The notes below the pieces were generated by a model. That model made no database searches and was not told where the DNA came from. It saw only the letters and a list, made by a program, of their open reading frames with translations. Both the position numbers and the translations under genes were made by a program. Shown here in pieces: positions 2,075 to 53,380 of a stretch of 64,000 nt of DNA (positions within the stretch are counted from its first letter, which is position 1; each line of letters starts with the position of its first letter). The DNA is taken from positions 124,001 through 188,000 of the IMG/VR virus record IMGVR_UViG_3300032236_001850. The stretch is one strand, 5' to 3'.

Positions 2075-2779
2075 TTAAAAACCGAGATCTCCAAGGGTTG
2101 ACATATCACTTAGACCTTCGCCGCCCTCACCCTCGAATCTTTTCCAAATTTCAGGTGCATATTTCTTAAGCAGGCTTAAGATCTCGAATGATTTCTGTGG
2201 ATATTTTTGGAGTGTTGAATTAAGCATCTCCATATCTGAGAAGAGAGTGAGCACTAAGGATTTTATCTTTGGTGTGTTGATTTTTTCTATTTCGTCTATA
2301 ATGCTTGGAATACTAAAATTTCCTTCATCAGTTCCGAAATAGGAGCATTCAAACTTTCCACCAACCTTAACAGGAAACCCTTCAAGAGTAACAAGTGGGT
2401 TGTACCATATATTATAATCTCTACCAACTTCAATAGGTCCGCCTTCTAATGATTTTATGCTGTTATTATTAACTAGGAAACTACCGCCAACTTTTGTAGG
2501 AGAGCCTTCCAAAGATTCCAATCCACAATTTGTAAATTGAAAATCCCCAGTAACTTCACCAAATTGAACTCCTTTAAAATCTCTACAAACAAGTTTTGAT
2601 TTTGTGTCATTCTCTCCGAATTTAACATCACCTTTCACATTAACCAGACCTGTTGATCTATCAAAGTCCCATTTGTCACCTGCAACCTTATTCAGGAAGA
2701 AGAATTGGTCCATTGAAGGACCATTATCATCATCCATATCAGAGGATTCGAAAATTTCGTATGCTTTTATATTTTTCAT
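2075..2779 (-). CDS. 22-aa LRR-type repeat protein with CTS-like leader
   Basis: Starts MKNIKAYEIFES; repeats SLEGSPTKVGGSF / SLEGGPIEVGRDY / TLEGFPVKVGGKF; ends LGDLGF. Confidence 0.8.
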   Translation of the reverse strand: MKNIKAYEIFESSDMDDDNGPSMDQFFFLNKVAGDKWDFDRSTGLVNVKGDVKFGENDTKSKLVCRDFKGVQFGEVTGDFQFTNCGLESLEGSPTKVGGSFLVNNNSIKSLEGGPIEVGRDYNIWYNPLVTLEGFPVKVGGKFECSYFGTDEGNFSIPSIIDEIEKINTPKIKSLVLTLFSDMEMLNSTLQKYPQKSFEILSLLKKYAPEIWKRFEGEGGEGLSDMSTLGDLGF

Positions 2780-2781
2780 AA

Positions 2782-3342
2782 TTATGTAAATTTTGTTGCT
2801 CTTTTAGCTTTTATTAATTTTGTATACAAATCCCTGTTTGGAAGTTTATTTAGAATTTCTTGTAAATCCTCCGAATCCACAAATCTCATTATTCTGGGTG
2901 GGTTTTTTATTAGAGAATCAATAACACATTGATCAAAATCATCAGTTCCGTTATTTTTAAATATCTCATCAACATTACTAAAAACTTTTTTAAATTCCTC
3001 AATTATTTTGTACGGATTTCTTTCAATACACCAGAATGAGTACTTCTCATTATTTCTTGGTTTAAGTCCACTCCAGGCTTCATAGTCCATATTGTCGGCA
3101 TCTTGACTATTCATTAATTCACCAACCTCACTCATAAGCATATAAAGATCAGTCACTGTTGAAGCATCAGCTTCCTCAGCAAACTCTGAAATAACAACCG
3201 CAGCTGCATCAAAGAAATCCTTAGCAACCACGATCAAGTAACCAATCGTTGATACCTCCCTGCCAGTTATTTCCATATAGAAAACAAATCCCATCATATC
3301 AGATTTGTCATTTAGTTCCTCGTATAGTTTAATGTTTCTCAT
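2782..3342 (-). CDS. Hypothetical protein with CTS-like leader
   Basis: Starts MRNIKLYEELND; ATGA overlap with upstream gene. Confidence 0.8.
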   Translation of the reverse strand: MRNIKLYEELNDKSDMMGFVFYMEITGREVSTIGYLIVVAKDFFDAAAVVISEFAEEADASTVTDLYMLMSEVGELMNSQDADNMDYEAWSGLKPRNNEKYSFWCIERNPYKIIEEFKKVFSNVDEIFKNNGTDDFDQCVIDSLIKNPPRIMRFVDSEDLQEILNKLPNRDLYTKLIKAKRATKFT

Positions 3343-3965
3343 AAAAATCCTCTTTTTAATGCCCTTCCTATATGGGAAAAATCCTTTATTCCCGCTTTAT
3401 CCATGATTTTTTTCTTTAAATCCGGACACGGATTCAGAATATAAGTTGATGTTGGTTTGTCCTTAAAGAATTTAATAACCTTCGATTCTGGGATTCTTGT
3501 TATTAAAGATTTTATAAGATCTGGATTTCCACAGTCTATTAGCGGCTCCAAATTTTCGGGATCATCCAGGTATTTTCTATTTGACATATCATAGTCATAA
3601 AGTTCCTTAACTGCAAATTTTTCTATCCCTCTAAATATTGACTCGTAATCGGAAACACTAGACACACTAAATCCCATAATGTATTCCCAATCAAAATCTT
3701 TAAATTCGTAAATACCAATTCTTATCTTATCGTTGGATGTTGGTGTCATCTCTCTCAATTCATACTTCAACACAGTTTCATCCTCACCATGTGGATAAAT
3801 GGTTATCTTAGTTACCTTGCCGTCCTGTTTTTGTTCTGTGTTAATATCCGCCCATTCGGAAATTTTCTTATATGCATCAAGATTTCCCAATGAACCAACA
3901 TAAGGTCTATAAACATTCTCGTTGATTTTTCTTCCGAAAAGATTGAAAGATTTAATTATTCTCAT
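3339..3965 (-). CDS. Hypothetical protein, CTS-like leader plus TGIKD C-terminal module
   Basis: MRIIKSFNLF...; ends KAGIKDFSHIGRALKRGFL; GATATATA at 3970-3977 on minus strand. Confidence 0.85.
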   Translation of the reverse strand: MRIIKSFNLFGRKINENVYRPYVGSLGNLDAYKKISEWADINTEQKQDGKVTKITIYPHGEDETVLKYELREMTPTSNDKIRIGIYEFKDFDWEYIMGFSVSSVSDYESIFRGIEKFAVKELYDYDMSNRKYLDDPENLEPLIDCGNPDLIKSLITRIPESKVIKFFKDKPTSTYILNPCPDLKKKIMDKAGIKDFSHIGRALKRGFL

Positions 3966-3983
3966 CCCTTATATATCCCAAAT

Positions 3984-4069
3984 AAAAAAGGTTGGAGTAG
4001 CGAATTCCAACCTTTACATAGCCGTAACTATTCCGGTCCTAAAATCTGACTTCAGAGAGTCAGCCGGAT
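3984..4069 (-). ncRNA. Candidate structured small RNA (unidentified)
   Basis: AATATATA promoter variant at 4074-4081 (minus); stems UCCGG/CCGGA and CUGACU/AGUCAG, a UACG-loop hairpin, then terminator GGUUGGA/UCCAACC-U6; no ORF. Confidence 0.45.
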
Positions 4070-4137
4070 GTTCTATATATTCTTTGCATCCCAATTTTTA
4101 GGTCGAAATTTGATATATAAACCAAAAACATAATAAA

Positions 4138-4773
4138 ATGAGAAAAGCATGCATCGTGTTATTTCTTTTGGTTTTTGGAGTGATTAATGCTCAAGACACC
4201 ATAAGACTTAAACACACAAACTACACTGCTGTCTACAGCAAGACTTTAAATTACCCAGTACTTGTTGAATGGTGGGAAACCAAAGCAAAGGACGGATGTC
4301 CAAGCCCATTAAAAAGAAAAGATGAATTCAAACCAGATCCGCTTCTACTTAAGGAGACAGATATAGCGAAGGATTATGTTGGATCAGGGTATGACAGGGG
4401 ACATATGTGCCCAGCAGCTTCCAATCTATGTAGTGGTGATAAAGTTCAATCTGAATGCTTCTATTTCAGCAATATGGCACCGCAGCTTCACAGATTAAAT
4501 GCTGGAGATTGGAAAGTATTAGAGATGAAAACAAGAGAGATAGCGATTGCTAATGACAGTGTACATGTTTGGTGTGGTAGCTTGGGAGAGATTAAAAAAG
4601 TTGGTAAGATATCAATACCTAAAACCTGTTGGAAAGTGGTTTACATCAAGAAAACAAAAATCTTTACAGCATACATTTTCAATAATGATGATTCAAAACC
4701 AGACGGAATAGAAAACAATATAGTTCCTCTGGAAGCAGTAGAAAAATTAACAGGATATAAATTTAAAAGGTAA
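4138..4773 (+). CDS. DNA/RNA non-specific endonuclease (NucA/EndA type) with signal peptide
   Basis: YDRGHMCPA motif, FYFSNMAPQ, LNAGDWKVLE; hydrophobic N-terminus ending VINA-QD. Confidence 0.92.
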   Translation: MRKACIVLFLLVFGVINAQDTIRLKHTNYTAVYSKTLNYPVLVEWWETKAKDGCPSPLKRKDEFKPDPLLLKETDIAKDYVGSGYDRGHMCPAASNLCSGDKVQSECFYFSNMAPQLHRLNAGDWKVLEMKTREIAIANDSVHVWCGSLGEIKKVGKISIPKTCWKVVYIKKTKIFTAYIFNNDDSKPDGIENNIVPLEAVEKLTGYKFKR

Positions 4774-4806
4774 AAAAAAGGCTGATATCAATATCAGCCT
4801 TTTTTT
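4773..4806. terminator. Bidirectional intrinsic terminator
   Basis: A7-GGCTGATAT-caa-TATCAGCC-T run between convergent genes. Confidence 0.85.
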
Positions 4807-5569
4807 ATATCATTCCAGATTTTAGTTTTCTACCTATTTTTCCGTAATCTTTTAACCCTGTCCTTTCCAATACTCCAGCCTTAAATTTCTCAAGATTGTC
4901 GATCTTATAGAGTTCCAATGGATTTTTCTTGAAAAAATTATCAATATCCTCAAGAACATCATAATTTATAGGATCGCCGATTTTTAATTTAAGTATGTAC
5001 TCTAGATATTTTCTAATGAAATTGGAATATTCCGGAAGATGTAATTTTTTACTCTCCAAACCAGCATAAGTCATATAAAATCTACCCCCATATTCTCTAA
5101 AAGCTAATAAAATTTGGGATATAATAAGATGAAAAATATAGTTATTATCTCCGCTAACCTCTATTTGTCTCTCCCCAGCTTCATCAGTTCCTATATAATC
5201 AAATTTATTCTCGTCAGATTCGCCAATTACAAATCTTATTTTATAAACATTTGAACCTGATCCAAGACCAGGAGAGCAACTCATTATTTTTTCATTGGGT
5301 TCTGGGTTTAGAGCCTGGGTAAAAGCATAACTTATTGTTCCCCAAAGGAAATATGTATTTAATATAACATCAAGTGTCTTGAGCCCATTTGATTTATAAT
5401 CATAGATATCACCAGCATCATAATTAGGAAAAACATGTAGACCAACAGCTTGAGAGTGATTATTTTTATCCACTCTAAAAGTTATACATTTTTCCAAATA
5501 ATGGTATATTGGAATACGATCAATTGATTCTGATTCAAAAAGTTGATCAAAGGATTTTATTATTTTCAT
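4805..5569 (-). CDS. Hypothetical protein, CTS-like leader plus TGIKD module
   Basis: MKIIKSFDQLFES; ends RTGLKDYGKIGRKLKSGMI. Confidence 0.85.
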   Translation of the reverse strand: MKIIKSFDQLFESESIDRIPIYHYLEKCITFRVDKNNHSQAVGLHVFPNYDAGDIYDYKSNGLKTLDVILNTYFLWGTISYAFTQALNPEPNEKIMSCSPGLGSGSNVYKIRFVIGESDENKFDYIGTDEAGERQIEVSGDNNYIFHLIISQILLAFREYGGRFYMTYAGLESKKLHLPEYSNFIRKYLEYILKLKIGDPINYDVLEDIDNFFKKNPLELYKIDNLEKFKAGVLERTGLKDYGKIGRKLKSGMI

Positions 5570-6684
5570 TATATGAGCCCTCCTCTTAATTTTCTACCGA
5601 TAGCACTAAAATCTTTAATCCCAGTTCTTCTTAAAACACCAGCTTTATATTCTGGATAATCATCAAGTAAATAAAGATCCGTTGGATTTTTTTTCATATG
5701 GTCATCTAGGATTTTTTCAACTTCGGAACTCAAAGATGAACCAAGAAGATAACTTCTAGCAAAATCGGTGAGCAAATTGGATTTTTCATTCATATCTATA
5801 TAGTTTTCACCTATATAAATATTCAAATGTTCGATTTCCGTAGTGATTATCTTCTCTATTTCTTTAACCACCTCATCAATAGTTTTATAACCAAGATAAA
5901 TTTTAATATCTCTCATCTTTTTACTACGACCATGAAGATCAAGGTTTCGATCGACATTTTTGCTTGTTACCTTTTTACCTTCCCCTTTCGGTATAATTCG
6001 GATTTCATTTGCATTGGTACCAATCATGTATTGATTATTGTTTCTTTTTACAGCACCGCTTATTTCCAATATAAAATCAGGGAAAATACGTATGCCAGCT
6101 AAGGCCAAATAACGAAAATTTATCACAATCCCAGCATTTTTACCTTGCATATAAATACCACTAATCGAATTAATATGATCTATCAATTTGGATTTACCCT
6201 TGATTAAAGAGAAATCTGTTATGATGTCGCTTCTTCTTTCTTTTCTGTATACAACATATAAATCGATTGGGAGTTCCCATATCTTGGAAAAGATGAAAGC
6301 ATCATCGTCAACAAGCTCTTTTGCTTCCTTCCTATTGAAATCATTAGGTGCAAACTTATAAACAATATCTCTGATGAAAGTTTGAAGCAGATCCACAAGA
6401 TTCGAAGAGTATTTCATACCGTAATGGCTCCCACTTGAAACAAAGGTAAAGTGCCAATCGCTTCCAGATTTATAAAAGTATGGGCTGCCCGGATTGTTAA
6501 CATAGTCACTGGTGTTTTTGTTTATCAACACATTTATTCTACCGGTTCTTGTTGGGTAAAGTCTATACCATTTTTGAATTTGCTCGAGTTCTCTAGTTCC
6601 TTCGGCTAGTCTGAAGAACTCCTCACAGTCCTCATTCATTTTGGCTGCTTCAAAAAGTTCATTAAAAGTTTTAATTATTCTCAT
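5569..6684 (-). CDS. Hypothetical protein, CTS-like leader plus TGIKD module
   Basis: MRIIKTFNELFEA; ends RTGIKDFSAIGRKLRGGLI; GATATATA at 6689-6696 (minus). Confidence 0.85.
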   Translation of the reverse strand: MRIIKTFNELFEAAKMNEDCEEFFRLAEGTRELEQIQKWYRLYPTRTGRINVLINKNTSDYVNNPGSPYFYKSGSDWHFTFVSSGSHYGMKYSSNLVDLLQTFIRDIVYKFAPNDFNRKEAKELVDDDAFIFSKIWELPIDLYVVYRKERRSDIITDFSLIKGKSKLIDHINSISGIYMQGKNAGIVINFRYLALAGIRIFPDFILEISGAVKRNNNQYMIGTNANEIRIIPKGEGKKVTSKNVDRNLDLHGRSKKMRDIKIYLGYKTIDEVVKEIEKIITTEIEHLNIYIGENYIDMNEKSNLLTDFARSYLLGSSLSSEVEKILDDHMKKNPTDLYLLDDYPEYKAGVLRRTGIKDFSAIGRKLRGGLI

Positions 6685-6694
6685 GAAGTATATA

Positions 6695-6985
6695 TCACTT
6701 CACAGAAATCCAACCCTTACCCAGACAAACCAGATTTATAATGTCACAGTGTTCATCTGGAATATTAACCATTGTGAAGTATGAATGATCATAATCCTTA
6801 TTTGATTCAGCAAAGACACCATATAGATTTCTTCCACTGTAATATCCTGCAAGTTTTCTTCTAATATCCATATCCTCGGAGTTGCCAAAGGAGTATTTCT
6901 GACCACCAATAAATTTGAAGGAGCCCATTATGGAATCATTTAGACAATATTCTTCTCTGTAGATAAAGGATTCACCGGAGCACAT
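6695..6985 (-). CDS. Hypothetical protein, C-terminal WxxVK
   Basis: TAATG coupling to upstream gene; ends GWISVK. Confidence 0.7.
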   Translation of the reverse strand: MCSGESFIYREEYCLNDSIMGSFKFIGGQKYSFGNSEDMDIRRKLAGYYSGRNLYGVFAESNKDYDHSYFTMVNIPDEHCDIINLVCLGKGWISVK

Positions 6986-7876: not shown

Positions 7877-7921
7877 TCCCACGGTGTCCGCACATACACG
7901 ACCGCATTCGATATATAATGT

Positions 7922-8554
7922 ATGAAAATAATAAAGACATTCGAGAGTTTCGAGGAGAAGGAATACACCTTTGATGAACTATCACAAGATGCAAAGAATC
8001 ATGCAATAGAGAACGAGAGAGGTTCATTGTATGACAGTATGGGTGATTGGTGGTACGAAGGAACAATAGAGGATGAAGCACAAAAACTAAGGGATGAGGG
8101 ATTTGAAGATGTTGATATACAATTTTCAGGATTCCACAGTCAAGGTGATGGAGCTTCATTTACTGGCAGAGTATCAGACATTAAACTTTTTGTTAAAGGC
8201 ACTCTCGATATGAAAACCATGAGCGACCAGGTTTTAGATAACATTTACATCTCAGTGGTTAGAACAGACACCAGACACGTTCATGAAAACTCGGTTAGGT
8301 TTGATTGTGAAGTTGACGGTGAGGAAGAAATAGTTTTATTCAGAGCACCAGGTTCAAATCTAGATATAAAAATATCAATTCAGTCTCAGTGTGATAAAAT
8401 AGAAGAAGTCGGAGCACCTTGGGTCAAGAGTAGATGTAAGGAGATATATGAAAAACTCGGTAAGGAGTACGACAGCTACTTTGAAGAGGAACACATAATA
8501 GCAGACATTAAAGCAAACGACTGTAAGTTTGACGAAGACGGAGATTTAATTTAA
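7922..8554 (+). CDS. YTFxELS-family phage protein with CTS-like leader
   Basis: YTFDELSQDAK..., FSGFHSQGDGASF; GATATATA 4 nt upstream; paralogous to 9805..10410. Confidence 0.85.
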   Translation: MKIIKTFESFEEKEYTFDELSQDAKNHAIENERGSLYDSMGDWWYEGTIEDEAQKLRDEGFEDVDIQFSGFHSQGDGASFTGRVSDIKLFVKGTLDMKTMSDQVLDNIYISVVRTDTRHVHENSVRFDCEVDGEEEIVLFRAPGSNLDIKISIQSQCDKIEEVGAPWVKSRCKEIYEKLGKEYDSYFEEEHIIADIKANDCKFDEDGDLI

Positions 8555-11322: not shown

Positions 11323-11479
11323 AAATTCAGGAGGTTATACTTCCAGTAAAACGAGAATACCAAAAAGCATGCCGTGTAAATTATGCGGAGAAAAAGTCAA
11401 AAACGTTGACGAAAAGGCTACAGCAGTAACTTGTTACAAATGTGTAATCAAGTTATGCAATAAACCAAATTTAAAATAA
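11309..11479 (+). CDS. Small zinc-finger protein
   Basis: CKLC...CYKC; probable ATG 11309. Confidence 0.75.
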   Translation: MATTKNSGGYTSSKTRIPKSMPCKLCGEKVKNVDEKATAVTCYKCVIKLCNKPNLK

Positions 11480-11489
11480 CCCATAAAGA

Positions 11490-12128: not shown

Positions 12129-12151
12129 TATATAGGAGAGCCCAATACCTT

Positions 12152-44225: not shown

Positions 44226-44268
44226 GAACCCGATTTTGCTAAGATATATAGAGAAAATAAGCAACAAA

Positions 44269-44677: not shown

Positions 44678-46609
44678 TTAGATAAATCCTCTTTTTAATA
44701 ATTTACCAATCTTTCCGGCGTCCGTTATTCCAGTTCTTTTTATAACACCAGCTTTTACATCAGGATGCGAGTCTAGCATATAAATATCCAATGGCATCTT
44801 TTTAAAATAATCATCCAAAGCAGAGTCACCTATAATCGAATCAAGAAGCGTAAATGTTTCCGGATGTTCCTTAAAAAACTCTATAAATCTACCCACATCC
44901 CATCGACCCTCATTCTGCATAATATATTTTTTACCATTTATATCAAATGAAAAATACTCACCAATCTCATCAGGTAACCCCTTAAGTGATTTCAAATTGT
45001 TACCTGTACAAATAAAATATCCTCCGACCTCCCCCGGTGCTCCTTCTAAGGATTCAAGATTGTTATCATAACATTGGAAGCTTCTACCAACGATTTCAGG
45101 TGCTCCCTCCAGAGTCTTTAATTTGTTTTTTGCACACACAAATGAATTCTGGATTTCCCTAGGTGCTCCCTTCAATGACACAAGTTTGTTATCATTACAA
45201 AAGAAGCCAAAGGAAAATTGAGGTGCTCCCTCCAATGAGGTTAACTCGTTACTGGTACAACTGTATTCACCCTCAACTATCTCCGGACCTCCTTTTAATG
45301 ACTTCAGCTTGTTTTCTTGACACTCAAACCTACCGGCCACCGTTCTAGGTCCTCCCTCCAGTGATTCTAGTTTATTCTTATTGCAAGTGAAATTACCATT
45401 AACAATTTGAGGTGCACCTTCAAGGGTTTTCAAATTGTTGTCTGAACAATCGAAACCATCCACCGTTTGTGGTGAACCTATTAACGATTCTAGATTACTA
45501 TTATTACAAGCTAAACTTTTCACTTTCTCTGGTGCTCCCATCAGGTTTTTTAAATTGTTGTATGAACAATTGAAACCACCATCCACCGTTTGTGGTGCTC
45601 CTTTTAGTGATGTTATATTATTTCTAGAACAGTTGAAATCTCCAGTAACGTGACCAAATTCAATGCCTTGGAAATTTCTTATTCCCCAGTCATTACATCT
45701 AAAAGTTCCTTTTATGTCCACAAGTCCAGTCTCCTCATTTATTTTCCATTCCCCACTAGTGCACTCGTTCAACCATTTAACTTTATTCGATTCCCTTCCA
45801 GTTCCACTAAGATCTTTAATTCCGGTTCTTTTTAGCACACCACTCTTTAAATCGGGAAGGTCGTCTAGTAGATATAAGTCCTCAGGATTCTCAGTGAAAT
45901 GATTGTCAAGTATATTCTCAATTTTTTTACCGTTTACTATTCCAAGATCGGAAAGACATGTCATCACATCCATATCATCTAATTTAATAGCGATACGAAC
46001 AAGGTCAGCAGCAAGATCAGATTTTATCTTAGAATTAAGAACAACCCCAGCTTTAATACCAGGAATTGACAGCAGAAATTCAAGTTGTTTGAATTGTCTA
46101 TAAATTTTGTAAATACCAGAATTTCCAGTAGGAAATCCTCTACTGTCACTGTTTGATGATGTTCTTAATTCTTCCTTAGATAGCTTATCTAGGATTCTTT
46201 TGATCGAAAGATTTAGTCCATAGAATTGTCCATTAAAAACAGCTTCCTTCAATGTAGAATATGAGATCTTTGAAACATATGTCATTTGTGCAATACTATA
46301 CAATATCAACTTTGTCATTGCATCGTTCATCTCCTCTTGTGTGGAGAAAGGCATATCTTTCTCAATTGTAAAACTTCCATAAATCAGGTTGACCTTTCCA
46401 TCACCGGAAGGCTTTAATGAACATGAGTAGGAGGTTCCAAAATTATATTCTCTCACCCCCAGGGAACTACTCTTGGCACCATCTCCCAAAAATTTCCTAG
46501 CCTTCTTATAAATAGGAAGTTTACTCAATGTTTCAAAAGACGGAAACTCCTCCTTGTCCTTTTTGGTTGCGCCTTCAAACAACTCATTAAATGTTTTTAT
46601 TCTTCTCAT
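44678..46609 (-). CDS. Chimeric LRR protein: CTS leader, domain, TGIKD module, 22-aa LRRs, second TGIKD module
   Basis: About 11 repeats of CxxNxLxSLxGAPxxVxGxF; module at ILDNHF...RTGIKD and at the C-terminus. Confidence 0.88.
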   Translation of the reverse strand: MRRIKTFNELFEGATKKDKEEFPSFETLSKLPIYKKARKFLGDGAKSSSLGVREYNFGTSYSCSLKPSGDGKVNLIYGSFTIEKDMPFSTQEEMNDAMTKLILYSIAQMTYVSKISYSTLKEAVFNGQFYGLNLSIKRILDKLSKEELRTSSNSDSRGFPTGNSGIYKIYRQFKQLEFLLSIPGIKAGVVLNSKIKSDLAADLVRIAIKLDDMDVMTCLSDLGIVNGKKIENILDNHFTENPEDLYLLDDLPDLKSGVLKRTGIKDLSGTGRESNKVKWLNECTSGEWKINEETGLVDIKGTFRCNDWGIRNFQGIEFGHVTGDFNCSRNNITSLKGAPQTVDGGFNCSYNNLKNLMGAPEKVKSLACNNSNLESLIGSPQTVDGFDCSDNNLKTLEGAPQIVNGNFTCNKNKLESLEGGPRTVAGRFECQENKLKSLKGGPEIVEGEYSCTSNELTSLEGAPQFSFGFFCNDNKLVSLKGAPREIQNSFVCAKNKLKTLEGAPEIVGRSFQCYDNNLESLEGAPGEVGGYFICTGNNLKSLKGLPDEIGEYFSFDINGKKYIMQNEGRWDVGRFIEFFKEHPETFTLLDSIIGDSALDDYFKKMPLDIYMLDSHPDVKAGVIKRTGITDAGKIGKLLKRGFI

Positions 46610-46744
46610 CCGTTATATATCCAAATTAAATGAAACTACATATACCCATGTGGCAATCACAGACTGAAATACATAGATAAAATAGAATCAAAAGAACCTC
46701 ATTCGAAGTGAACCTGTCTAAAATCCGATACCGATATATACAAA

Positions 46745-47152
46745 ATGAAACACATCAACACATTCTACCAACACATTAACGAATCAAAATCTCAAATAGC
46801 GGAAGCCATAGAGGTTAACGCAGATGAATTTGAATCAGCCGGTTCAAAAGAAGGAAATTTCATGGTTAATTTTCCAAAGGAAGATGTTGAAATTTTGAAG
46901 GATTTGAGTGAATTGATTGGATTTGAATGCGTTTCACAAGTTGGCATATTTCTAATGGTTACTAGAGATCCAAGCACTAGAGAAAAACCATTGGCATATT
47001 TTTCTAAAACCGCTAAATTATACAGAATGGAAATATACCCGAAGGAGCTTACCTGAGATAAATTATACTACTTGGGTGATTCACCAGAATCATTGATGGC
47101 TGTTTTCCTCAGCTATGTTGGATGGAGACCAGAGTGGATTAAAATAAGATAA
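46745..47152 (+). pseudogene. CTS-leader/WIKIR gene interrupted by in-frame TGA (47054-47056)
   Basis: Frame continues after TGA as DKLYYLGDSPESL...PEWIKIR-TAA. Confidence 0.75.
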
Positions 47153-47156
47153 TCAA

Positions 47157-47584
47157 ATGAAACACATACATACATTCTACCAACACATCAACGAATCTCA
47201 ACTCGAAATAGAATCGACCAATCTACCGGATGGGGTAAAAGAGATTGATGAAGAGGAACTTAAAAAATGGGGAAAAAAGCCACACAAATTCTTACCATCG
47301 GGGATGATGAAGCATTTAAACAGTTTAAAAATTGGACTGGAGTGACCAAATCTGAGGATCCCCGGGATTTGCTAGTCCTTAAATCATCATCCACCTCAGA
47401 GGAATATCAATGGTGCTTTGTTCTTTGGACCAAGGAAGAAGATGAGGAGAAAGCAAGACGATTTCTTTCAAGAACACTAGAGGGTGTTTTTGTAACATAC
47501 ATTATCACCTCACCGTCACAAAAAGTTAGAGAGCAGCTAATGCACTACATCAACGATTATGTTAAATGGATCAAAATCAGATAG
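47157..47584 (+). pseudogene. CTS-leader/WIKIR gene split by -1 frameshift at A-AAA-AAG (47273-47279)
   Basis: Leader in frame of 47157; WIKIR in the -1 frame (47267..47584). Confidence 0.75.
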
Positions 47585-47605
47585 ACAAATAAAACATAGA
47601 CAATA

Positions 47606-48046
47606 ATGAAAAACTTAATGATTTTTACTGATTTTTTAAAAGAATCAATTAATTCAGGTGGAATGCCACATCGAAGATATGAAGAAATAACTAAAGATCA
47701 ATGGCGAGAGAAAAAAGAAACACTCCAATGTGTTAGCTTGACAAATGATGAGATAGAGTCAATAGATGAAATATATGAATTTATAAGGGATGTTATATAC
47801 CCAAAAGCAGAAAGAATAAAGTTTTGGGAGTTTTCTCAGAAAGACACTCAATATCTCATCGAAATACGTGATTTAAACATTATGATTACTAAATATTCAC
47901 CATCAATGTGGTTAATTTTTACTAATAGGAATGAGGATGTAGAAGATGAACATTTTTATATTGCAACTTCATTAAAGGAAACAATCGATCTTACAGCATA
48001 TCTTGCGGGTGAATTATTTCATATCGAATGGATCAAAATAAGATAG
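47606..48046 (+). CDS. CTS-leader/WIKIR protein
   Basis: MKNLMIFTDFLKES...IEWIKIR. Confidence 0.85.
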   Translation: MKNLMIFTDFLKESINSGGMPHRRYEEITKDQWREKKETLQCVSLTNDEIESIDEIYEFIRDVIYPKAERIKFWEFSQKDTQYLIEIRDLNIMITKYSPSMWLIFTNRNEDVEDEHFYIATSLKETIDLTAYLAGELFHIEWIKIR

Positions 48047-48050
48047 AAGA

Positions 48051-48683
48051 ATGAAACACATCCATACATTCTCACAACACATCAACGAGAGCTCCTCTCA
48101 GGAGATCATGGACTTCTGCAAGAAGTACAAGATTTCAATTGAACAGTTTAGAGGACAGGAGGAAATCCCAGGTGATTTTAGAAAACTTTCAAATCTAAAA
48201 TCCATTCCTTCAGGTTTCAACCCAAAGGTTGAAGGGAATCTGACTCTTTCCTCGATTTACAGCTTACCTGATGGGTTTTCACCCGTTGTTGGTGGAGATC
48301 TGGAACTGCATGAACTGAATCATTTGCCAGAGGGATTCTCACCCACTGTGGGAAGAGATCTACATCTGAACTATCTAAATCGTATTCCATATGAATTCAC
48401 TGTTAATGTGGGAGACAATCTGATTTTAGATAATGTGTATGAGGTTGGGAAGGGATTCTCACCCACTGTGGGCGGCAATCTGGATCTAGGATCACTCAGA
48501 ATTTATGCGGAAGGATTCTCACCCATCGTGGGCGGGAATCTAATCTTAAATAAAATGGAAAGCATTCCGCTAAAAGGTGTTTCGCTAAAAGGAGTTAAAG
48601 GAAAGATAGAACTTTTTCACAATTACAATCGTGTAAATCTAGAAACCATAGCGGGTGATATAAAATGGATCAAAATAAGATAG
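48051..48683 (+). CDS. CTS-leader/WIKIR protein with 22-aa LRR-like repeats
   Basis: Repeats LxxLPEGFSPxVGGDLxL; DNA repeat ggattctcaccca about every 66 bp. Confidence 0.85.
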   Translation: MKHIHTFSQHINESSSQEIMDFCKKYKISIEQFRGQEEIPGDFRKLSNLKSIPSGFNPKVEGNLTLSSIYSLPDGFSPVVGGDLELHELNHLPEGFSPTVGRDLHLNYLNRIPYEFTVNVGDNLILDNVYEVGKGFSPTVGGNLDLGSLRIYAEGFSPIVGGNLILNKMESIPLKGVSLKGVKGKIELFHNYNRVNLETIAGDIKWIKIR

Positions 48684-48695
48684 GGTATATAGCAC

Positions 48696-49517
48696 ATGAA
48701 AAGAATACTAACATTCCACCAGCTATTTGAAGCAGCCAAACCAAAGGACACATCTTGGATGCCAACCCCCGCGGAGATAAGTCAATTGGAAATTTTTCAA
48801 AATCTGAGAGATGATCATCTTATACGTTTATCCGAACCATACCTCTTAACACAGGGTCAGATAGAAAGGAATGTGAGATCAATAAGTTTTTCAACAGACA
48901 CCAATAACCTTTATAGACTGGAGCCAAATTCAGATGGCACAATCAACATCAAATTTGGAAGAAGCTACATAGCCAAAAATAAGCCTTTCAAAAACCAGGA
49001 GGAAATGACGGATGTTATTATTTACTTAATGATCGTAACAATAGCAATTTATGATCCTGTATGGAGTCGTAAGCCACACAATCCACCCAAAAGAACTCCT
49101 TTCAATGACGATCACGTGAAACTAAATGGGGAATTGGAGAGAGGTGATCTCGAAGGCTTGCTAAACGGCATCACAGAGCTTATGAAATCCAAATTTGGAT
49201 TCTGTGAGGAAAGACTGGTCCAGATTGCGATCATTCTGATGTGGTACATGAAGTCAGCCACACAGGAGGCAAAAAACAACTTCATAAAGCAACTGATCGT
49301 CAATGTGACAGCAGAGAGAATGTTCTTGCATTGGTGCCATCTGCCTAAAATTTTATCTCATCGCCAACCCTTCGTGTCGATGCCTGCAGTTACGGAAGGT
49401 CTCTCCATGGCATTCTCAGATTTTCTTAATAACAATGGGGATGCTCCAATGCCACCAGCTCTGGGGGAGTTCCTTTCCAAGATAACCGATGGGTTCAGAT
49501 GGATTAAAATCAGATAA
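48696..49517 (+). CDS. CTS-leader/WIKIR protein
   Basis: MKRILTFHQLFEA...FRWIKIR; N-terminal part resembles that of 44678..46609. Confidence 0.85.
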   Translation: MKRILTFHQLFEAAKPKDTSWMPTPAEISQLEIFQNLRDDHLIRLSEPYLLTQGQIERNVRSISFSTDTNNLYRLEPNSDGTINIKFGRSYIAKNKPFKNQEEMTDVIIYLMIVTIAIYDPVWSRKPHNPPKRTPFNDDHVKLNGELERGDLEGLLNGITELMKSKFGFCEERLVQIAIILMWYMKSATQEAKNNFIKQLIVNVTAERMFLHWCHLPKILSHRQPFVSMPAVTEGLSMAFSDFLNNNGDAPMPPALGEFLSKITDGFRWIKIR

Positions 49518-49576
49518 CCAGATAAATAAATCATCACTGATTAAAGTGGGATATATAAATAAAATAAAACCAAAAA

Positions 49577-50062
49577 ATGAAACACCTAATCGCCTTTGAG
49601 ATTTTTGAAAATGAGAATATGGAATCTCTAATTCCTAAAATTGCTATTTTTAGCGAGGGTGACTACTATAAACTAAAGGAATATATAAAATCCAATAACA
49701 TAAAGACTGATCTCATTCCCCACCATTTCCCATACGAGGAATATTACAGAGATAATATTAAACGTGGTCAGAGGGGCAATAATTTTTTCTATATCATCAA
49801 CGATAAGGTTATGTTGTACCCAAGTCCAGGATACGATAAAAAATTGAAAAAACTAACAGATAGGGATCTAAATTTTCCTAAATCCCACAGAGCTGCATAC
49901 ATTAAAGATTTCAGAAACATCCCACTAGAGGAACTTTACAACAACTCGGAAGAAATACTTGGGTACTCAATATTCCTACTGGACAAACTTATAACAAAGG
50001 CGAAGCAAATGACAAGAAGCAAATTAACACCATTTGAGGTGACTCTATTCGATAGAGATTAG
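49577..50062 (+). CDS. Hypothetical protein with CTS-like leader
   Basis: MKHLIAFEIFEN; GATATATA at 49550. Confidence 0.82.
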   Translation: MKHLIAFEIFENENMESLIPKIAIFSEGDYYKLKEYIKSNNIKTDLIPHHFPYEEYYRDNIKRGQRGNNFFYIINDKVMLYPSPGYDKKLKKLTDRDLNFPKSHRAAYIKDFRNIPLEELYNNSEEILGYSIFLLDKLITKAKQMTRSKLTPFEVTLFDRD

Positions 50063-50065
50063 CAC

Positions 50066-50521
50066 ATGAAACACATACACACATTTCACCAACACGTCAA
50101 CGAATCCCAATCTCTACCTTCAGGGGTAAGCAAGGTGACAGCCGATGAGTATACAAAACAAAAATGTGTTCCTCTATCCCAGGAGGAAACTGAAAACATC
50201 TTATTCTTAACTAATATAGTGGAACTTGCTTCTTCGACAGATCCACAGAGGAAAAACGCGGATAGCGAGGACAATCAGATCTATCTTTGCGCTGGTTTTT
50301 ATCCTTATGGAGCTATTCCGCCATGGGCATTCTTCGGAAAGTCAAAGTCAGGAATTTACTATCTATCAGCTAATCCCACACGATTAACGGACACAGAAGG
50401 CCAGGAAAGCAACTATTACGCTGCAAACTCATTGCAACCTCTAATTTCAATTGCTCTTGATATGTTCATTAAACTTGGAATGGTTGATACCTCCGGAATC
50501 AGCTGGATCGAAATCAAGTAA
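50066..50521 (+). CDS. CTS-leader protein ending WIEIK
   Basis: MKHIHTFHQHVNES...ISWIEIK. Confidence 0.85.
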   Translation: MKHIHTFHQHVNESQSLPSGVSKVTADEYTKQKCVPLSQEETENILFLTNIVELASSTDPQRKNADSEDNQIYLCAGFYPYGAIPPWAFFGKSKSGIYYLSANPTRLTDTEGQESNYYAANSLQPLISIALDMFIKLGMVDTSGISWIEIK

Positions 50522-50665
50522 ACCTCTAAGGGGCCGGCCACCGGAGATCTAACATCCAACATCATTATAGCACGTTTAAGGGACAATAATCTACAAACCC
50601 ATATCTACATCTTATTAGAGAGATATAAACAAGCTACACTCAAATAAACAACCGCATATAAGCAT

Positions 50666-51028
50666 ATGAAACACATCCTACATATAGACACGTATCAACA
50701 CATGAACGAGTCAATAACAAACCCATCATGGGAGAGAGAAGGCACAAGAGTCACACTGGCAGATATAGAGCCACACCTAGAAGAGGAGTTGCTAATCCAA
50801 CCGGACTCCATAGCACATCTACTCATACCCACAGAGAGGGATCCTAGAAGAGTGGCACAAGCCAATCTGGATCACCCAATCATACTCACAAGAGACAAGG
50901 GCCAGCTCACAAGCATACTAGATGGACAACACAGAGTCACAAAAGCCATAGAGCAAGGCAAGTGGGTAAAGGCAAGACAACTCGATCTAGACACAGTCCC
51001 AGAACACATAGCCAAGGTGCTCAGATAA
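50666..51028 (+). CDS. ParB/Srx N-terminal-like protein with CTS-like leader
   Basis: RVAQANLDHPIIL...ILDGQHRVTKA. Confidence 0.75.
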   Translation: MKHILHIDTYQHMNESITNPSWEREGTRVTLADIEPHLEEELLIQPDSIAHLLIPTERDPRRVAQANLDHPIILTRDKGQLTSILDGQHRVTKAIEQGKWVKARQLDLDTVPEHIAKVLR

Positions 51029-51543
51029 CCCAACTCTCATAGAGGCATTCTAAAGGGACTTAGGAAGCAAACCATATAGAGAGATAGTCAGAATAATATA
51101 ACACAGACACGGCCAGGTAATCGCGTTTAACGACCCCCTTCGGAAGCCCCTCTGCATGTGTGAGTTACCACCCAGGGCTGTCCCAACAAGATTTCCTCGT
51201 CGCCCCGATTTCCCATTTCATTCCACTTCTCTCCACTTTGTTCCACTGGGCAAGAGTTTCCACACAGAAACCCACGTTTTCTTTAGGAAAAACCAAATCT
51301 TTTATATATCCGTGATTTTGGGACGAGGTTCCCTGAACACCCATCACTATCTCGCCCCGAACCATGCCTCTTCCCTACATCTCTCTATGTGGAATGGATC
51401 TCCTGCCTCTCTATTAGAGACGGAACATTCTATGTGGCATTATCTCTCTATGCTCTCTCTATAGGAATGACTACCGGGTTGGCCGGCCCTCACCCCTATC
51501 TTGGCCCCAAATTCCCCCATTGCCGGCAGAGGATATATAGTGT
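51029..51543. other. GC-richer non-coding locus with skew flip and CTCTCTAT repeats (candidate origin/terminus)
   Basis: CTCTCTAT at 51381, 51407, 51444, 51455, inverted copy at 51076; TGGCCGGCCC at 51480 inverted to 50530. Confidence 0.45.
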
Positions 51544-52185
51544 ATGAGACACCTTAAGATTTTTGAAATGAACCCAGCCTTCTACGAGGATCCACCGGAA
51601 CCAAAACGTGAGGGAGCGGATGTGGAGTACCCAGAGCATGAGCAGCTCTTCTCCCCTGTGTTCTGCCATGAGGGGTATCCAGAAGAAGATAAAGTCAGAG
51701 GAGAGAAAGGTTACCCTGACTTTGCCATAGTGATGGACAAGACACCTCAGAAAGCCATATGGGTTGTGAGAGATATTGACGATGTCATTCCCGAGAGCTA
51801 CCTGACCTATTGGGAAACGTCCGAAGGAGGCGAGCATGTCCAAGACACCAACTCCATCCTGAACTTTGCCACTGACGAATTCAAAGCCGGTAGATGGGTG
51901 GATGGCTTTGATGCTTGGGACGAGGATGAATGGGCAGTGGATCTTGTGAAGATCACCACTGTGGAAGATGTGGATTCCCTTATCCAAGATCTCTCCAACT
52001 TCATTAACCCGAGCCACGCCTCCTACTATGGCAAGGTGAGAAATCCCAAGATCAAAGATCACTACAGAATTAGTCACGTTCCAGGTGAGGGCGAGATCTC
52101 TTTGGCGAAGAGAGCAATCAGAGCGCTAGAGATATACAAGAGAAGGATTGAATCAAACACCGTCGGCGGGTCCACACCGGCTTAA
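51544..52185 (+). CDS. Acidic hypothetical protein with CTS-like leader
   Basis: MRHLKIFEM; GATATATA 4 nt upstream. Confidence 0.82.
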   Translation: MRHLKIFEMNPAFYEDPPEPKREGADVEYPEHEQLFSPVFCHEGYPEEDKVRGEKGYPDFAIVMDKTPQKAIWVVRDIDDVIPESYLTYWETSEGGEHVQDTNSILNFATDEFKAGRWVDGFDAWDEDEWAVDLVKITTVEDVDSLIQDLSNFINPSHASYYGKVRNPKIKDHYRISHVPGEGEISLAKRAIRALEIYKRRIESNTVGGSTPA

Positions 52186-52315: not shown

Positions 52316-52365
52316 ATTCGAAAGGATTTTGTATATTTGCAATGTAAACAATAAGGCCCCAGGTA

Positions 52366-52390
52366 CATACTATGTTACTAACATACTATG
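52366..52390. repeat. Nested palindrome element, copy 2
   Basis: catactatgttactaacatactatg. Confidence 0.9.
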
Positions 52391-52415
52391 TCTGAGACCA
52401 CGGCAAACACGAACT

Positions 52416-52619
52416 ATGCGCAGACTTAAGAACGGATGGGAGATCGCGGGAGCGACATCAATATGTATTGCTCTCGCGAGCATCTTTATATACATCATGT
52501 GGGAACTCGGCTTATATGGGATGCCTAGTACTACCGATGTGGTTGTCTCAGTAGTACTCACAGCTGTCACACTCTTTCTCTTTATCTGGAGCCCACCCGA
52601 CGAGAACTCTAATACATAG
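52416..52619 (+). CDS. 67-aa two-TM protein flanked by palindrome repeats
   Basis: MRRLKNGWEIAG...; stop codon lies inside repeat copy 3. Confidence 0.7.
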   Translation: MRRLKNGWEIAGATSICIALASIFIYIMWELGLYGMPSTTDVVVSVVLTAVTLFLFIWSPPDENSNT

Positions 52620-52640
52620 TATGTTACTAACATACTATGT
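52614..52640. repeat. Nested palindrome element, copy 3 (perfect 13-bp arms)
   Basis: ACATAGTATGTTA-C-TAACATACTATGT. Confidence 0.92.
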
Positions 52641-52683
52641 CTGGGACTGACCACGAACACGTACACGAACTAATTAATAGAAA

Positions 52684-52989
52684 ATGAAAACATATCAACT
52701 TAAAACACCTTACTCAGAGTACACCGTTATATTATCGGGCGGCACGTATGCGAACGGACGTCAAGCTATTCGCATACTAGACGCGGAGGATGGGTTACCA
52801 GTTATGACTGCCACTGTGAATGTCCCTGAGGTGGATCTGGAACCAGGTGAGATCATCATCAAGAACTACTCAGAGAACGAAGGGTGCTTGCCCTTTCTCA
52901 TCACCAACGGTGTTGTCTCCTCTGTCGAGAGATGGGTTGGCCACGGTATGGCTGTTGTGAAACTCCTGATAGACATAGACGATATATAG
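52684..52989 (+). CDS. DUF4313-like protein
   Basis: YANGRQAI...ATVNVP...IIKNYSENEG. Confidence 0.65.
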   Translation: MKTYQLKTPYSEYTVILSGGTYANGRQAIRILDAEDGLPVMTATVNVPEVDLEPGEIIIKNYSENEGCLPFLITNGVVSSVERWVGHGMAVVKLLIDIDDI

Positions 52990-53005
52990 AGGAAAACTCT
53001 ATAGA

Positions 53006-53380
53006 ATGAAACACCTAATGCTTTTTGAAAGCTTCTTTCGCCGCGGTGCGATGGATCCGACCGCCTTGCAATTGGTCAAAATCGGCGGTGCGGTTAATCC
53101 GGCTTTAGGCTTCCTTAAAAAACACGACATAGATACCCTTACCGAAGCTGGTATAGAGACCGAAGTGGTTGGAGAAATCACAGGGAAAGACGACTACGCT
53201 TTCTGGGATATCAACGGTGTTTTATCGGATCCCTATTATGTTGCTTTCACTCATCCTGGCAAGGAGAATTCCCTTATGACAAAGGAGAAGAATTTCGAGA
53301 TACATCCTGGTAAAATATACTTCCGAAGAAAGGGTGGTTGGGCGAAAGAAAACGTCAGTGATTTCATCCAATCAAGATAA
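53006..53380 (+). CDS. Hypothetical protein with CTS-like leader
   Basis: MKHLMLFESFF; GATATATA at 52981. Confidence 0.8.
   Translation: MKHLMLFESFFRRGAMDPTALQLVKIGGAVNPALGFLKKHDIDTLTEAGIETEVVGEITGKDDYAFWDINGVLSDPYYVAFTHPGKENSLMTKEKNFEIHPGKIYFRRKGGWAKENVSDFIQSR

Follow-up and report, generated by a model that had tools for sequence, protein, structure and literature searches.

A T4-type capsid-targeting-like leader on late genes of a huge phage with a predicted Bacteroidota host

The DNA analyzed here, called the window, is a stretch of 64,000 nucleotides (nt) that comprises bases 124,001-188,000 of the 434,509-bp IMG/VR contig IMGVR_UViG_3300032236_001850, JGI identifier Ga0335263_1453039, the genome sequence of a huge phage. 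Twenty-six of its genes encode proteins that begin with a short leader peptide, and their transcription units are headed by the AT-rich element GATATATA or a near variant of it. We consider it likely that the leader is a capsid-targeting propeptide of the T4 type, carried by late-made proteins that would be packaged in the head and injected into the host; packaging, cleavage, and injection are the steps that we infer. The reading is supported, at the level of sequence, by the confinement of the leader to late transcription units, by its modularity, by the late-promoter character of GATATATA, and by a leader core identical to that of an internal head protein annotated in a T4-type phage; a T4-type head module is encoded by phages with the same leader. 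Around the window, 133,369 bases of the contig were read contiguously (94,360-227,728; 133 of 434 kb). Minus-strand genes are named by the low end of their coordinates.

A first-pass annotation of the window had proposed that 26 genes share the leader. All 26 open reading frames (ORFs) are present, and the leader is clear on ~22 of them but weak on four. In its clear form it reads M-x-x-[ILM]-x-x-[FYI], followed within 18 residues by a hydrophobic-x-Glu end, and the wider consensus of 11-16 residues is M-[KR]-x-[IL]-K-[TS]-F-x-x-[FLH]-[I/F/x]-x-E, ~3 residues longer N-terminally than that of T4. The peptide is short, amphipathic, and acidic, and it has no hydrophobic core. The motif begins at Met1 in 26/26 genes, as it would in an N-terminal propeptide of ~10-19 residues. 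Among the canonical-register leaders (n = 24), position 7 is F, Y, or I in all 24 and position 10 is F, L, or H in 21; four leaders stand in a shifted register (39517, MIKKYDDFINE; 39893, MILKFDEFLAE; 44269; and 38558). An [ILVMF]-x-E end, the feature expected at the processing positions, closes ~22 of the 26. A strict pattern, ^M..[ILM]..[FYI].{0,7}[ILVMF].E, matches 19 of the 148 N-termini of called ORFs. Eighteen of these are listed leader genes, and the nineteenth, 9805, matches by chance and is actually a leaderless paralogue; without its Met the pattern occurs at 0.58% of internal positions, and ~0.9 N-terminal matches are expected by chance. Because the codons vary under identical leader residues (44% of pairs differ in codon, where the codon usage of the window would predict 53%), the conserved object is the peptide and not a DNA repeat. 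A bacteriocin-type double-glycine leader was considered and rejected, the GG site being absent.

Two gene models were revised. Gene 15734 starts at ATG 16414 and not at TTG 16459, which places its leader at the exact N-terminus, 21 nt after GGATATATA. A frameshift divides one gene of the HINES/WIKIR group into ORF 47157-47345, its 5' part, and 47267-47584, the rest, which overlaps the first in another frame; the cause is either decay to a pseudogene or a fault in the assembly. Counting beyond the window, ~45 leader genes lie in 94-228 kb of the contig. Three are upstream, one of them an RNase_T exonuclease (MKNLSTFSQFLNE/S), and ~15 are downstream at 194-226 kb, including an OmpA-family protein and a tandem trio starting MKNIKTF.QLFEN. 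The sub-family pattern MKHI.TF.QHINE was found in this contig only and was too narrow to help. The features of the window are given below, a slash marking the end of the leader; lengths are in amino acids (aa), and LRR stands for leucine-rich repeat.

2075-2779, minus strand: leader gene, 234 aa, MKNIKAYEIFE/SS; LRR-like repeats; C-terminus ...LGDLGF; third in the operon from the promoter at 3977
2782-3342, minus strand: weak leader gene, 186 aa, MRNIKLYEELND; without the hydrophobic-x-Glu end
3339-3965, minus strand: leader gene, 208 aa, MRIIKSFNLFGRKINE; shared C-terminal tail ...IGRALKRGFL
3970-3977, minus strand: GATATATA, 4 nt before the ATG of 3339-3965; terminator-like hairpin just upstream
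4112-4119, plus strand: GATATATA, 18 nt before the secreted Endonuclease_NS gene 4138-4773
4138-4773, plus strand: Endonuclease_NS gene; classical signal peptide, no leader
4805-5569, minus strand: leader gene, 254 aa, MKIIKSFDQLFE/S; shared tail ...IGRKLKSGMI
5569-6684, minus strand: leader gene, 371 aa, MRIIKTFNELFE/A; shared tail ...IGRKLRGGLI
6689-6696, minus strand: GATATATA, 4 nt before the ATG of 5569-6684
7910-7917, plus strand: GATATATA, 4 nt before the ATG of 7922-8554
7922-8554, plus strand: leader gene, 210 aa, MKIIKTFESFEE/KE, then YTFDELS...; phrog_5162 family; paralogue of 9805-10410
9805-10410, plus strand: leaderless paralogue and internal control; cargo domain as in 7922 (MRTLNIYTFSELSEEAKKRAIQ); TAnnTTTG early promoter
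14358-15179, minus strand: leader gene, 273 aa, MERLKSFNEFINE/D; CHAP peptidoglycan hydrolase
15201-15208, minus strand: GATATATA, 21 nt before the ATG of 14358-15179
15734-16414, minus strand: leader gene, 226 aa, MNNIKSFGDFINE/M; Glucosaminidase domain
16436-16443, minus strand: GATATATA, 21 nt before ATG 16414
38529-38536, plus strand: GATATATA, 21 nt before the ATG of 38558-38878
38558-38878, plus strand: leader gene, 106 aa, MNIIKTFESFHAFD; core good, end atypical
39015-39022, plus strand: GATATATA, 4 nt before the ATG of 39027-39512
39027-39512, plus strand: weak leader gene, 161 aa, MKHILSIDEAYRH
39517-39885, plus strand: leader gene, 122 aa, MIKKYDDFINE/S; 11-aa leader near the T4 type
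39893-40039, minus strand: leader gene, 48 aa, MILKFDEFLAE/K; predicted mature peptide of 37 aa, a CW.G.KQ.G...VPNCV module plus a KRKKKRKKK tail
40039-40620, minus strand: leader gene, 193 aa, MRHIALFESFVGE/R; ADP-ribosyltransferase-like fold (ART-PolyVal / AcrIF11-like)
40636-41208, minus strand: leader gene, 190 aa, MKHIRKYELFE/SESSGSGGG
41226-41233, minus strand: GATATATA, 17 nt before the ATG of 40636-41208; at the head of the operon 40636 > 40039 > 39893
44243-44250, plus strand: GATATATA, 18 nt before the ATG of 44269-44568
44269-44568, plus strand: leader gene, 99 aa, MENIKPYESFNLE/P
44678-46609, minus strand: leader gene, 643 aa, MRRIKTFNELFE/G; ~ten LRR-like repeats; shared tail module twice (internal and C-terminal)
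46614-46621, minus strand: GATATATA, 4 nt before the ATG of 44678-46609
46733-46740, plus strand: GATATATA, 4 nt before the ATG of 46745-47056; at the head of the run 46745-48683
46745-47056, plus strand: leader gene, 103 aa, MKHINTFYQHINE/S
47157-47584, plus strand: frameshifted leader gene; 47157-47345 encodes MKHIHTFYQHINE/S, and 47267-47584 ends ...KWIKIR
47606-48046, plus strand: leader gene, 146 aa, MKNLMIFTDFLKE/S; C-terminus ...EWIKIR
48051-48683, plus strand: leader gene, 210 aa, MKHIHTFSQHINE/S; 22-aa repeats; C-terminus ...KWIKIR
48684-48691, plus strand: promoter variant GGTATATA, 4 nt before the ATG of 48696
48696-49517, plus strand: leader gene, 273 aa, MKRILTFHQLFE/A; N-terminal domain as in 44678; C-terminus ...RWIKIR
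49550-49557, plus strand: GATATATA, 19 nt before the ATG of 49577
49577-50062, plus strand: leader gene, 161 aa, MKHLIAFEIFE/NE
50066-50521, plus strand: leader gene, 151 aa, MKHIHTFHQHVNE/S; C-terminus ...SWIEIK
50654-50661, plus strand: promoter variant GCATATAA, 4 nt before the ATG of 50666
50666-51028, plus strand: leader gene, 120 aa, MKHILHIDTYQHMNE/S; ParB_N-like lead (DGQHR motif)
51532-51539, plus strand: GATATATA, 4 nt before the ATG of 51544
51544-52185, plus strand: leader gene, 213 aa, MRHLKIFEMNPAFYE/D
52981-52988, plus strand: GATATATA, 17 nt before the ATG of 53006
53006-53380, plus strand: weak leader gene, 124 aa, MKHLMLFESFFRR; core present, terminal Glu absent

GATATATA occurs 19 times in the window against 4.56 ± 2.38 copies expected, a count reached in 0 of 100 dinucleotide shuffles. 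Fourteen copies lie upstream of a leader-gene ATG, seven at 4 nt and seven at 17-21 nt; of the others, one precedes the secreted leaderless nuclease and four are orphans. The annotation had placed the element before the leader genes or the first gene of their run, and all 26 do lie in such transcription units, headed by GATATATA itself for 24 and by the one- or two-base variants GGTATATA and GCATATAA for 48696 and 50666, respectively. It had also noted that no TAnnTTTG promoter directly precedes them: at the usual distance of 24-36 nt there is none (0/26), and the 28 genes that do have TAnnTTTG at 24-36 nt are all without a leader. Over the 133 kb, the leader is found on 18 of the 35 genes directly behind [GA]ATATATA and on 14 of the 208 others (table 18/17/14/194, Fisher p = 1e-9; contig 94,360-227,728), most of these 14 being downstream members of such operons. 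The four orphan copies, at 12127-12134 (plus), 26190-26197 (plus), 33766-33773 (minus), and 51303-51310 (minus), are followed within 30 nt by neither a leader gene nor an obvious ORF; the last faces a GC-rich stretch (45% G+C, 50-52 kb) with doubtful ORFs only.

We read the ATATATA element as the late promoter of this lineage because it precedes the capsid genes of relatives and the tail-fibre genes of this phage, in line with the late role first assigned to it. In the contig, GATATATA stands before two tail-fibre-like genes whose proteins have no leader. In related phages, 53 distinct regions upstream of the capsid gene were compared, and all except a few have nATATATAGAt ~25 nt ahead of the ATG, which at sequence level points to co-expression of leader genes with head genes; two outlier capsid loci, L191 and L203, have a short hairpin in place of the promoter. 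The T4 consensus TATAAATA is not enriched in the window (8 + 3 copies, not gene-associated): GATATATA (nATATATAGA) acts like a T4 late promoter, yet is a different element. In related loci (L135-L215), the spacing between ATATATA and ATG has a sharp maximum at 4 nt, with 119 ORFs, and 5 nt, with 26, besides a broad second class at 16-30 nt. The window shows the same two classes, with 4 nt at 3970-3977, 6689-6696, 7910-7917, 39015-39022, 46614-46621, 46733-46740, and 51532-51539. Since a 4-nt spacer leaves no room for an untranslated region, many late mRNAs in the clade are probably leaderless.

Early promoters are of another kind (-33 TTTG, -7 TAnnTTTG). About 30 of them, all on the plus strand, lie at 8604-63130 of the window and share the long consensus TTTGaAAAgGATTTCwTATATTTGCaatGTAATtAAAA, all in one direction. 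The extended form is nearly confined to the window, with one match elsewhere on the whole contig, leading to the downstream leader cluster. Behind one TAnnTTTG promoter, 16 kb beyond the window and next to a DUF7336 gene, is a gene for a phage sigma factor of 300 aa with a match to Sigma70_r2 only (E = 2.4e-15; contig 204.4-205.3 kb, L237:17074-17976), a candidate reader of the -10-only GATATATA promoter. The check for a gp55-like sigma thus yielded a sigma factor matching in region 2 only. Homologues of gp55, gp33, and the clamp were not identified in the contig stretch read, the sigma factor not having been compared with gp55 itself.

Both the capsid-targeting sequence (CTS) and the diversity among the internal proteins of T4 are familiar from textbooks, and the T4 internal proteins with a CTS were reportedly described by Mullaney and Black in 1996. 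The likeness of the leader to a CTS, as first proposed, gained support from a pattern search, from an annotated Tequatrovirus protein, and from the conservation of key positions. A DNA search of IMG/VR that allowed every coding of K[ST]F.[DE]FINE, the leader core, and left the start codon unspecified hit more than 120 loci, which is a lower bound; the KSFNEFINE / KSFGDFINE core of two window genes was found there at an exact ORF N-terminus. Among the matches listed, 74 of 87 distinct hits (85%) fall within 1-6 codons of a start codon; again among the matches listed, 43 have the 10-aa, T4-length form MK[TS]F..FINE and 21 the 13-aa form of the window. One of the 10-aa cases, MKTFKEFINE/AAAPK..., is the start of an annotated internal head protein at the ipI locus of the Tequatrovirus (Escherichia phage) vB_EcoM_G8. 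The propeptides of gp24 (MAKINELLRE), Alt (MELITELFDE), gp22, and gp21 of that phage have a M-x-x-[IL]-x-E-[LF]-x-x-E look and stand behind TATAAATA. In T4 the CTS is MKTYQEFIAE (PMC8442874); mutagenesis of the IPIII CTS assigned residues 4 and 7 to targeting and residues 8 and 10 to processing, and the CTS loads foreign proteins up to the size of beta-galactosidase (PMC9026906). The counterparts of positions 4, 7, 8, and 10 in the leaders are the conserved F, F/L, I/L, and E, and 39893 (MILKFDEFLAE) and 39517 (MIKKYDDFINE) resemble MKTYQEFIAE plus one residue, with conservative changes. Membership of the leader in the T4 CTS family is supported by these comparisons.

The tag is modular in that the same tag occurs on unrelated cargos and the same cargo occurs with or without it. 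The best 120 homologues of 40039 (55-84% identity, contigs up to 523 kb) all carry the leader (120/120), with a variable linker of 0-5 residues between it and the invariant LYHGNRKGDFPP (LYHGNRKG domain). In the AlphaFold model of 40039, the mean predicted confidence (pLDDT) is 92.2, and residues 1-8 are below 50, disordered, and off the fold. For the cargo of 7922, close homologues have the leader and variable linkers, and distant homologues, together with the phage's own early gene 9805, have no leader; a third class joins the leader to a CW.GYKQ.G.K..GK.VPNCV module and then to the cargo. Gene 39893 (48 aa) consists of that module entirely, and its product, by analogy with T4 internal proteins, may be a small basic DNA-associated head peptide; the module was also seen in leader proteins of other phages. 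In the sister phage described below, the leader is unchanged on the CHAP orthologue and differs at 3 of 13 residues on the glucosaminidase orthologue, and the sequence after the leader diverges.

The cargos had been said to include hydrolases, an ADP-ribosyltransferase (ART), LRR proteins, and a ParB-like protein. The hydrolases were confirmed by Pfam (CHAP in 14358, glucosaminidase in 15734), and RNase_T and OmpA were matched on leader proteins outside the window. For the LRR proteins, repeats of 22-24 residues are visible in the sequence and make up 2075, 44678, and 48051, but Pfam gave no hit. The ART and the ParB-like protein turned out to be leads of moderate strength only. ESM Atlas neighbours of 40039 are ART-PolyVal and AcrIF11, Pfam being negative; its best PDB fold match is AcrIF11 (probability 0.95, Foldseek E = 0.033), followed by ART toxins, all weak, and by inspection the invariant R20, T38, and E171 fit an R-S/T-E triad. 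On these models 40039 is a candidate ADP-ribosyltransferase-like protein. Gene 50666 has the DGQHR motif and ParB_N neighbours in ESM Atlas. For most cargos, Pfam and PHROGs returned nothing, and no family is recognisable. The nuclease 4138-4773, a DNA/RNA non-specific endonuclease (Pfam E = 2.5e-34), is predicted to be a late exported protein and not head cargo.

The description of the cargos as unrelated held in part: some share repeats, a domain, or tails, and the others have no BLASTP similarity at 1e-3. LRR-like repeats are common to 2075 and 44678, and an N-terminal domain to 44678 and 48696. Three types of C-terminal ending recur. A ~45-aa tail is common to 3339-3965, 4805-5569, 5569-6684, and 44678-46609 (twice in the last); it reads N-P-x-D-L-Y-L-L-D...K-A-G-V-L-K-R-T-G-I-K-D-F-S-x-I-G-R-K-L-[KR]-x-G-[LFM]-[ILM]-stop, has no Pfam match, and is found outside the window too (L237:10001-10564, 11167-11925). 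It may be a second signal for sorting, anchoring, or C-terminal processing. An ending ...[KEFR]WIKIR-stop is shared by 47267-47584, 47606-48046, 48051-48683, and 48696-49517, with WIEIK in 50066-50521. The third, ...D-M-x-x-L-G-D-L-G-F-stop, occurs in 2075-2779 and L237:10564-11157.

Head machinery was traced in phages with the same leader. A 167-kb contig carries a homologue of 40039 at a distance of 8 kb from the gene for a Gp23-family capsid protein. Relatives of this protein number at least 231 in IMG/VR and ~2,000 in the protein collection, and the contigs that encode them reach 611 kb. The gene order in related loci is Portal_T4 (E = 9e-56), a protein of ~700 aa, and Gp23 (E = 3e-28). 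The ~700-aa protein matches Peptidase_S80 and Peptidase_S77 over its N-terminal 240 residues in all 15 members examined, this domain being fused to a coiled-coil scaffold. The protease domain aligns with Tequatrovirus gp21 over NRNxRxY, E(L/F)(N/D)HP, and VSSR(G/A) (hhalign E = 2.4e-5), the last two blocks holding the catalytic His and Ser of gp21; by sequence, its profile matched nothing in the PDB. The gp21-like protease sought as a test of the CTS proposal exists as an S77/S80 domain in phages sharing the leader, but was not found in the 133 kb of this contig. The N-terminal part of the relatives' capsid protein ends ...EYAEFHSINE/NAYVNASN, with the same I-N-E as many leaders, which is likely the boundary of a capsid propeptide. 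The capsid gene is followed by one for an NFACT-R protein that bears the leader, and further leader genes are frequent near the head module. The relatives' capsid proteins are 51-72% identical to those of the published Mahaphages, whose genomes are 634-735 kb (Al-Shayeb et al. 2020, PMC7162821), and ~30% identical to those of Lak phages. The clade thereby takes in the Mahaphages, whose records include LR745206.1 and LR756501-4, and the Gp23-type capsid also occurs in jumbo phages of Tenacibaculum, Chryseobacterium, and Flavobacterium. As a side observation, the clade's Gp23-type capsid proteins all start MSHIRID..KKW.PVLENMG (L136-L215, from ~10001, first 52 codons), and near the head module of related huge phages is a gene (L213:1489-2580, L240:9663-10739) called glutamine-synthetase-like from its N-terminus MN/IKLEYIWLDGS only.

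A course of events can be proposed from these features. Early genes, including the region-2 sigma factor just outside the window, would be read from host-type Bacteroidota promoters. Later, GATATATA promoters without a -35 element would drive virion genes (tail fibres; the capsid in relatives) together with the leader genes, possibly with the help of that sigma factor, and at a 4-nt spacer the mRNA would start at or next to the AUG and be leaderless. The amphipathic leader would dock its protein onto the scaffolding core of the assembling prohead, and a gp21-like prohead serine protease of the S77/S80 clan would cut after the Glu of hydrophobic-x-Glu; in T4, exchange of this Glu for Asp blocks cleavage. 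The short peptide would then leave, and the cargo would stay in the head with the DNA. On infection, the cargo would be ejected into the host: the CHAP and glucosaminidase enzymes, the OmpA-like peptidoglycan binder, the RNase_T exonuclease, the AcrIF11-like ADP-ribosyltransferase, the ParB-like and LRR proteins, small basic peptides, and many proteins of no known family.

Several points weigh against this interpretation. More than 45 cargo species per head is far beyond any characterised phage; some cargos may go to other places, occur in very few copies, or represent paralogues in decay (one gene is frameshifted), and some are mutually related. Four of the 26 leaders are weak or without the terminal hydrophobic-x-Glu (2782, 38558, 39027, and 53006). 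The ART assignment of 40039 draws on weak Foldseek E-values (best 0.033), and the ParB-like nature of 50666 is a language-model lead. In the 133 of 434 kb read (94-228 kb), this contig's genes for the prohead protease, scaffold, portal, and capsid were not found. The contig was absent from the best 80 of 231 in the capsid-protein locus search, and neither two DNA patterns combining the promoter with the capsid N-terminus nor a capsid homologue search found its capsid gene. Membership of the phage in the Gp23 clade is indirectly suggested by the shared leader, promoter architecture, and cargo genes.

The most serious of four alternatives, which we nonetheless hold to be unlikely, is that the N-terminus sorts proteins to another place, such as the tail or baseplate, a phage-built intracellular structure, or a docking site for a chaperone or regulated proteolysis, its likeness to the T4 CTS being convergent. 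The CHAP, glucosaminidase, and OmpA-like cargos act on the cell wall, and such enzymes are often tail-associated; the conserved C-terminal tails on many cargos suggest more than one sorting step, and the head genes of this contig were not seen in the 133 kb. On the other side, the same leader core is found on an annotated T4-type internal head protein, the leader ends in a gp21-type cleavage motif with the I-N-E of the relatives' capsid N-terminal part, and the tail-fibre-like late genes here have no leader. We give a smaller chance still to the idea that the leader genes are one expanded paralogous family whose N-terminus and tails were kept by descent or recombination and carry no signal. 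Several members do share LRR repeats, the N-terminal domain, or C-terminal tails, they stand in tandem runs, and codons 2 and 3 are a single codon each, AAA/AGA and CAC. This does not sit well with the unrelated Pfam domains and folds behind the leader (CHAP, glucosaminidase, RNase_T, OmpA, ART-like), with cargo domains that occur leaderless here and elsewhere, with a leader on unrelated proteins in hundreds of other phages, T4 relatives included, or with synonymous variation close to random expectation.

The two remaining alternatives seem to us very improbable, the second slightly more so. One holds that the conserved start is a feature of mRNA or translation, its codons serving initiation on late transcripts that are leaderless or lack a Shine-Dalgarno sequence. 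Half of the direct promoters are exactly 4 nt from the ATG and codon 2 is always AAA or AGA, as this would predict; however, what stays constant under varying codons is the terminal Glu and the hydrophobic character of positions 4, 7, and 10, genes inside operons and genes with an untranslated region of 17-28 nt have the leader just as well, and ~130 late ORFs with a 4-5-nt spacer in related phages have no leader. The other would make the leader an export or membrane signal that sends cell-wall-active proteins to the periplasm at lysis, for which the peptidoglycan hydrolases and the OmpA-family protein among the cargos speak. The leader is, however, a short, acidic, amphipathic peptide with no hydrophobic core, the truly secreted proteins have classical signal or lipoprotein peptides (nuclease 4138; ORFs 20483, 41775, and 37476), and most cargos have no link to the envelope.

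The T4-type capsid-targeting reading can be extended. With ~45 tagged genes in 133 kb, a number that might exceed 100 over the whole 434 kb, the phage would load its head with an effector arsenal on the scale of a secretion system, marked by a detachable N-terminal tag that would occur throughout Mahaphage-type phages, many of its members also bearing one of three C-terminal tails as a second sorting or ejection signal. We put this forward tentatively, as a possibility toward which our own judgement leans less than away. If true, the injected proteome of the largest known phages would be readable straight from sequence.

The window has no match among deposited phages (megablast, 24 kb of window), and the 434-kb contig is without a near relative among deposited phage records; a near-identical 434,721-bp ENA contig and a 430,120-bp sister phage exist. 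The sole deposited relative by its RecA/KaiC-like protein is LR756508.1 (484 kb, 33% identity). It was dropped as a proxy, with no leader genes in the 100 kb read, GATATATA absent from the first 50 kb (the only stretch counted), and Bacteroidota promoters absent from the other 50 kb. Because ~30 plus-strand genes lie behind TTTG-N-TAnnTTTG promoters of the Bacteroidota sigma-A type, the host is predicted to be a member of the Bacteroidota. Directly upstream of the window are five giant tail-fibre-like genes (871-1,839 aa), one with collagen repeats. A GcrA-like early gene with a sigma-70 region-4-like helix-turn-helix sits between two divergent late operons (contig ~104.4-105.1 kb, L132:10001-10729); in the same locus, L132, tRNA-like 3' ends lie at ~5.3 and 6.65 kb, yet ARAGORN calls no tRNA there. 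An array of 13 tRNA genes lies at contig ~210.3-217.1 kb (L238:12650-19498). The window gave no sign of stop-codon recoding, long ORFs ending at TAA, TAG, and TGA alike, and no Rfam family matched in it.

To what use huge phages put their very large capsids and the hundreds of unknown genes that they carry is an open question, and almost none of them can be cultivated. If the tag has the function that it has in T4, the combination of a late promoter with a ~13-residue leader and its hydrophobic-x-Glu end would list the proteins that enter the cell ahead of gene expression. Such a list would gather candidates for cell-wall breaching, nucleases, ADP-ribosyltransferases of the anti-CRISPR-like kind, and further factors against host defence. 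The range of the targeting signal, so far T4 and close relatives, would widen to phages of Bacteroidota with 0.15-0.7 Mb; for phage engineering, a packaging tag that is natural and portable is suggested, and the 4-nt promoter spacing indicates that late mRNAs in the clade are often leaderless. A CTS variant three residues longer, on dozens of genes per genome in huge Bacteroidota phages, appears to be new, as do the added C-terminal tails and the GATATATA late-promoter architecture, probably leaderless. The huge-phage papers compared, in a literature check that was not exhaustive, do not mention these features, and Al-Shayeb et al. (PMC7162821) mention no targeting leader, internal proteins, or ATATATA promoter.

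Among known systems, the Mahaphages are like the present phage in their predicted Bacteroidota host and in the leader-type genes that flank the capsid gene of LR745206.1, whereas the 434-kb contig has no near relative among deposited phage records. The ejection or inner-body proteins of phiKZ, 201phi2-1, and SPN3US are processed by gp175-type (S80) prohead proteases (PMC5694885, PMC7411985). These too are giant phages with a large protein mass in the head and cleavage after Glu by a gp21-related protease, and the protease domain in relatives of the phage studied here also matches Peptidase_S80. Their propeptides, however, are mostly longer than 100 residues with no common short tag, ~8-19 processed proteins are known there against dozens with one leader here, and their capsid and portal lineages and hosts differ. 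Polyvalent proteins and MuF-fused toxins (ART-PolyVal, PF18760) likewise deliver anti-host enzyme domains with the DNA from the head, and ART-PolyVal is the type nearest to cargo 40039; there the enzyme is fused to a head protein or a giant multidomain protein, whereas here the genes are separate and small with a detachable tag. The T4 late system, with TATAAATA, no -35, and gp55/gp33/gp45, resembles the present one in using a single AT-rich 8-mer without a -35 before virion and CTS genes, and the phage here encodes its own sigma factor with a region-2 match only; the promoter sequence differs (GATATATA, nATATATAGA before structural genes), and the sharp 4-nt-spacer class implies leaderless mRNAs. 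The closest parallel is offered by T4's IPI, IPII, and IPIII internal proteins and by Alt, which carry the CTS (reviewed in PMC9026906, PMC3012670). Both systems have a short propeptide at the exact N-terminus, with hydrophobic residues three apart and a hydrophobic-x-Glu end, on otherwise unrelated, fast-evolving proteins behind late promoters, and one cargo here is, like Alt, ADP-ribosyltransferase-like. Unlike those of T4, most leaders here have 12-14 residues with an extra M-x-x-[IL] in front, the host is predicted to be one of the Bacteroidota, and the promoter is GATATATA in place of TATAAATA. The cargos are larger (up to 643 aa), often enzymatic, and in many cases equipped with conserved C-terminal tails; and where T4 has three internal proteins and Alt in 169 kb, the present phage has at least 26 leader genes in 64 kb and ~45 in 133 kb.

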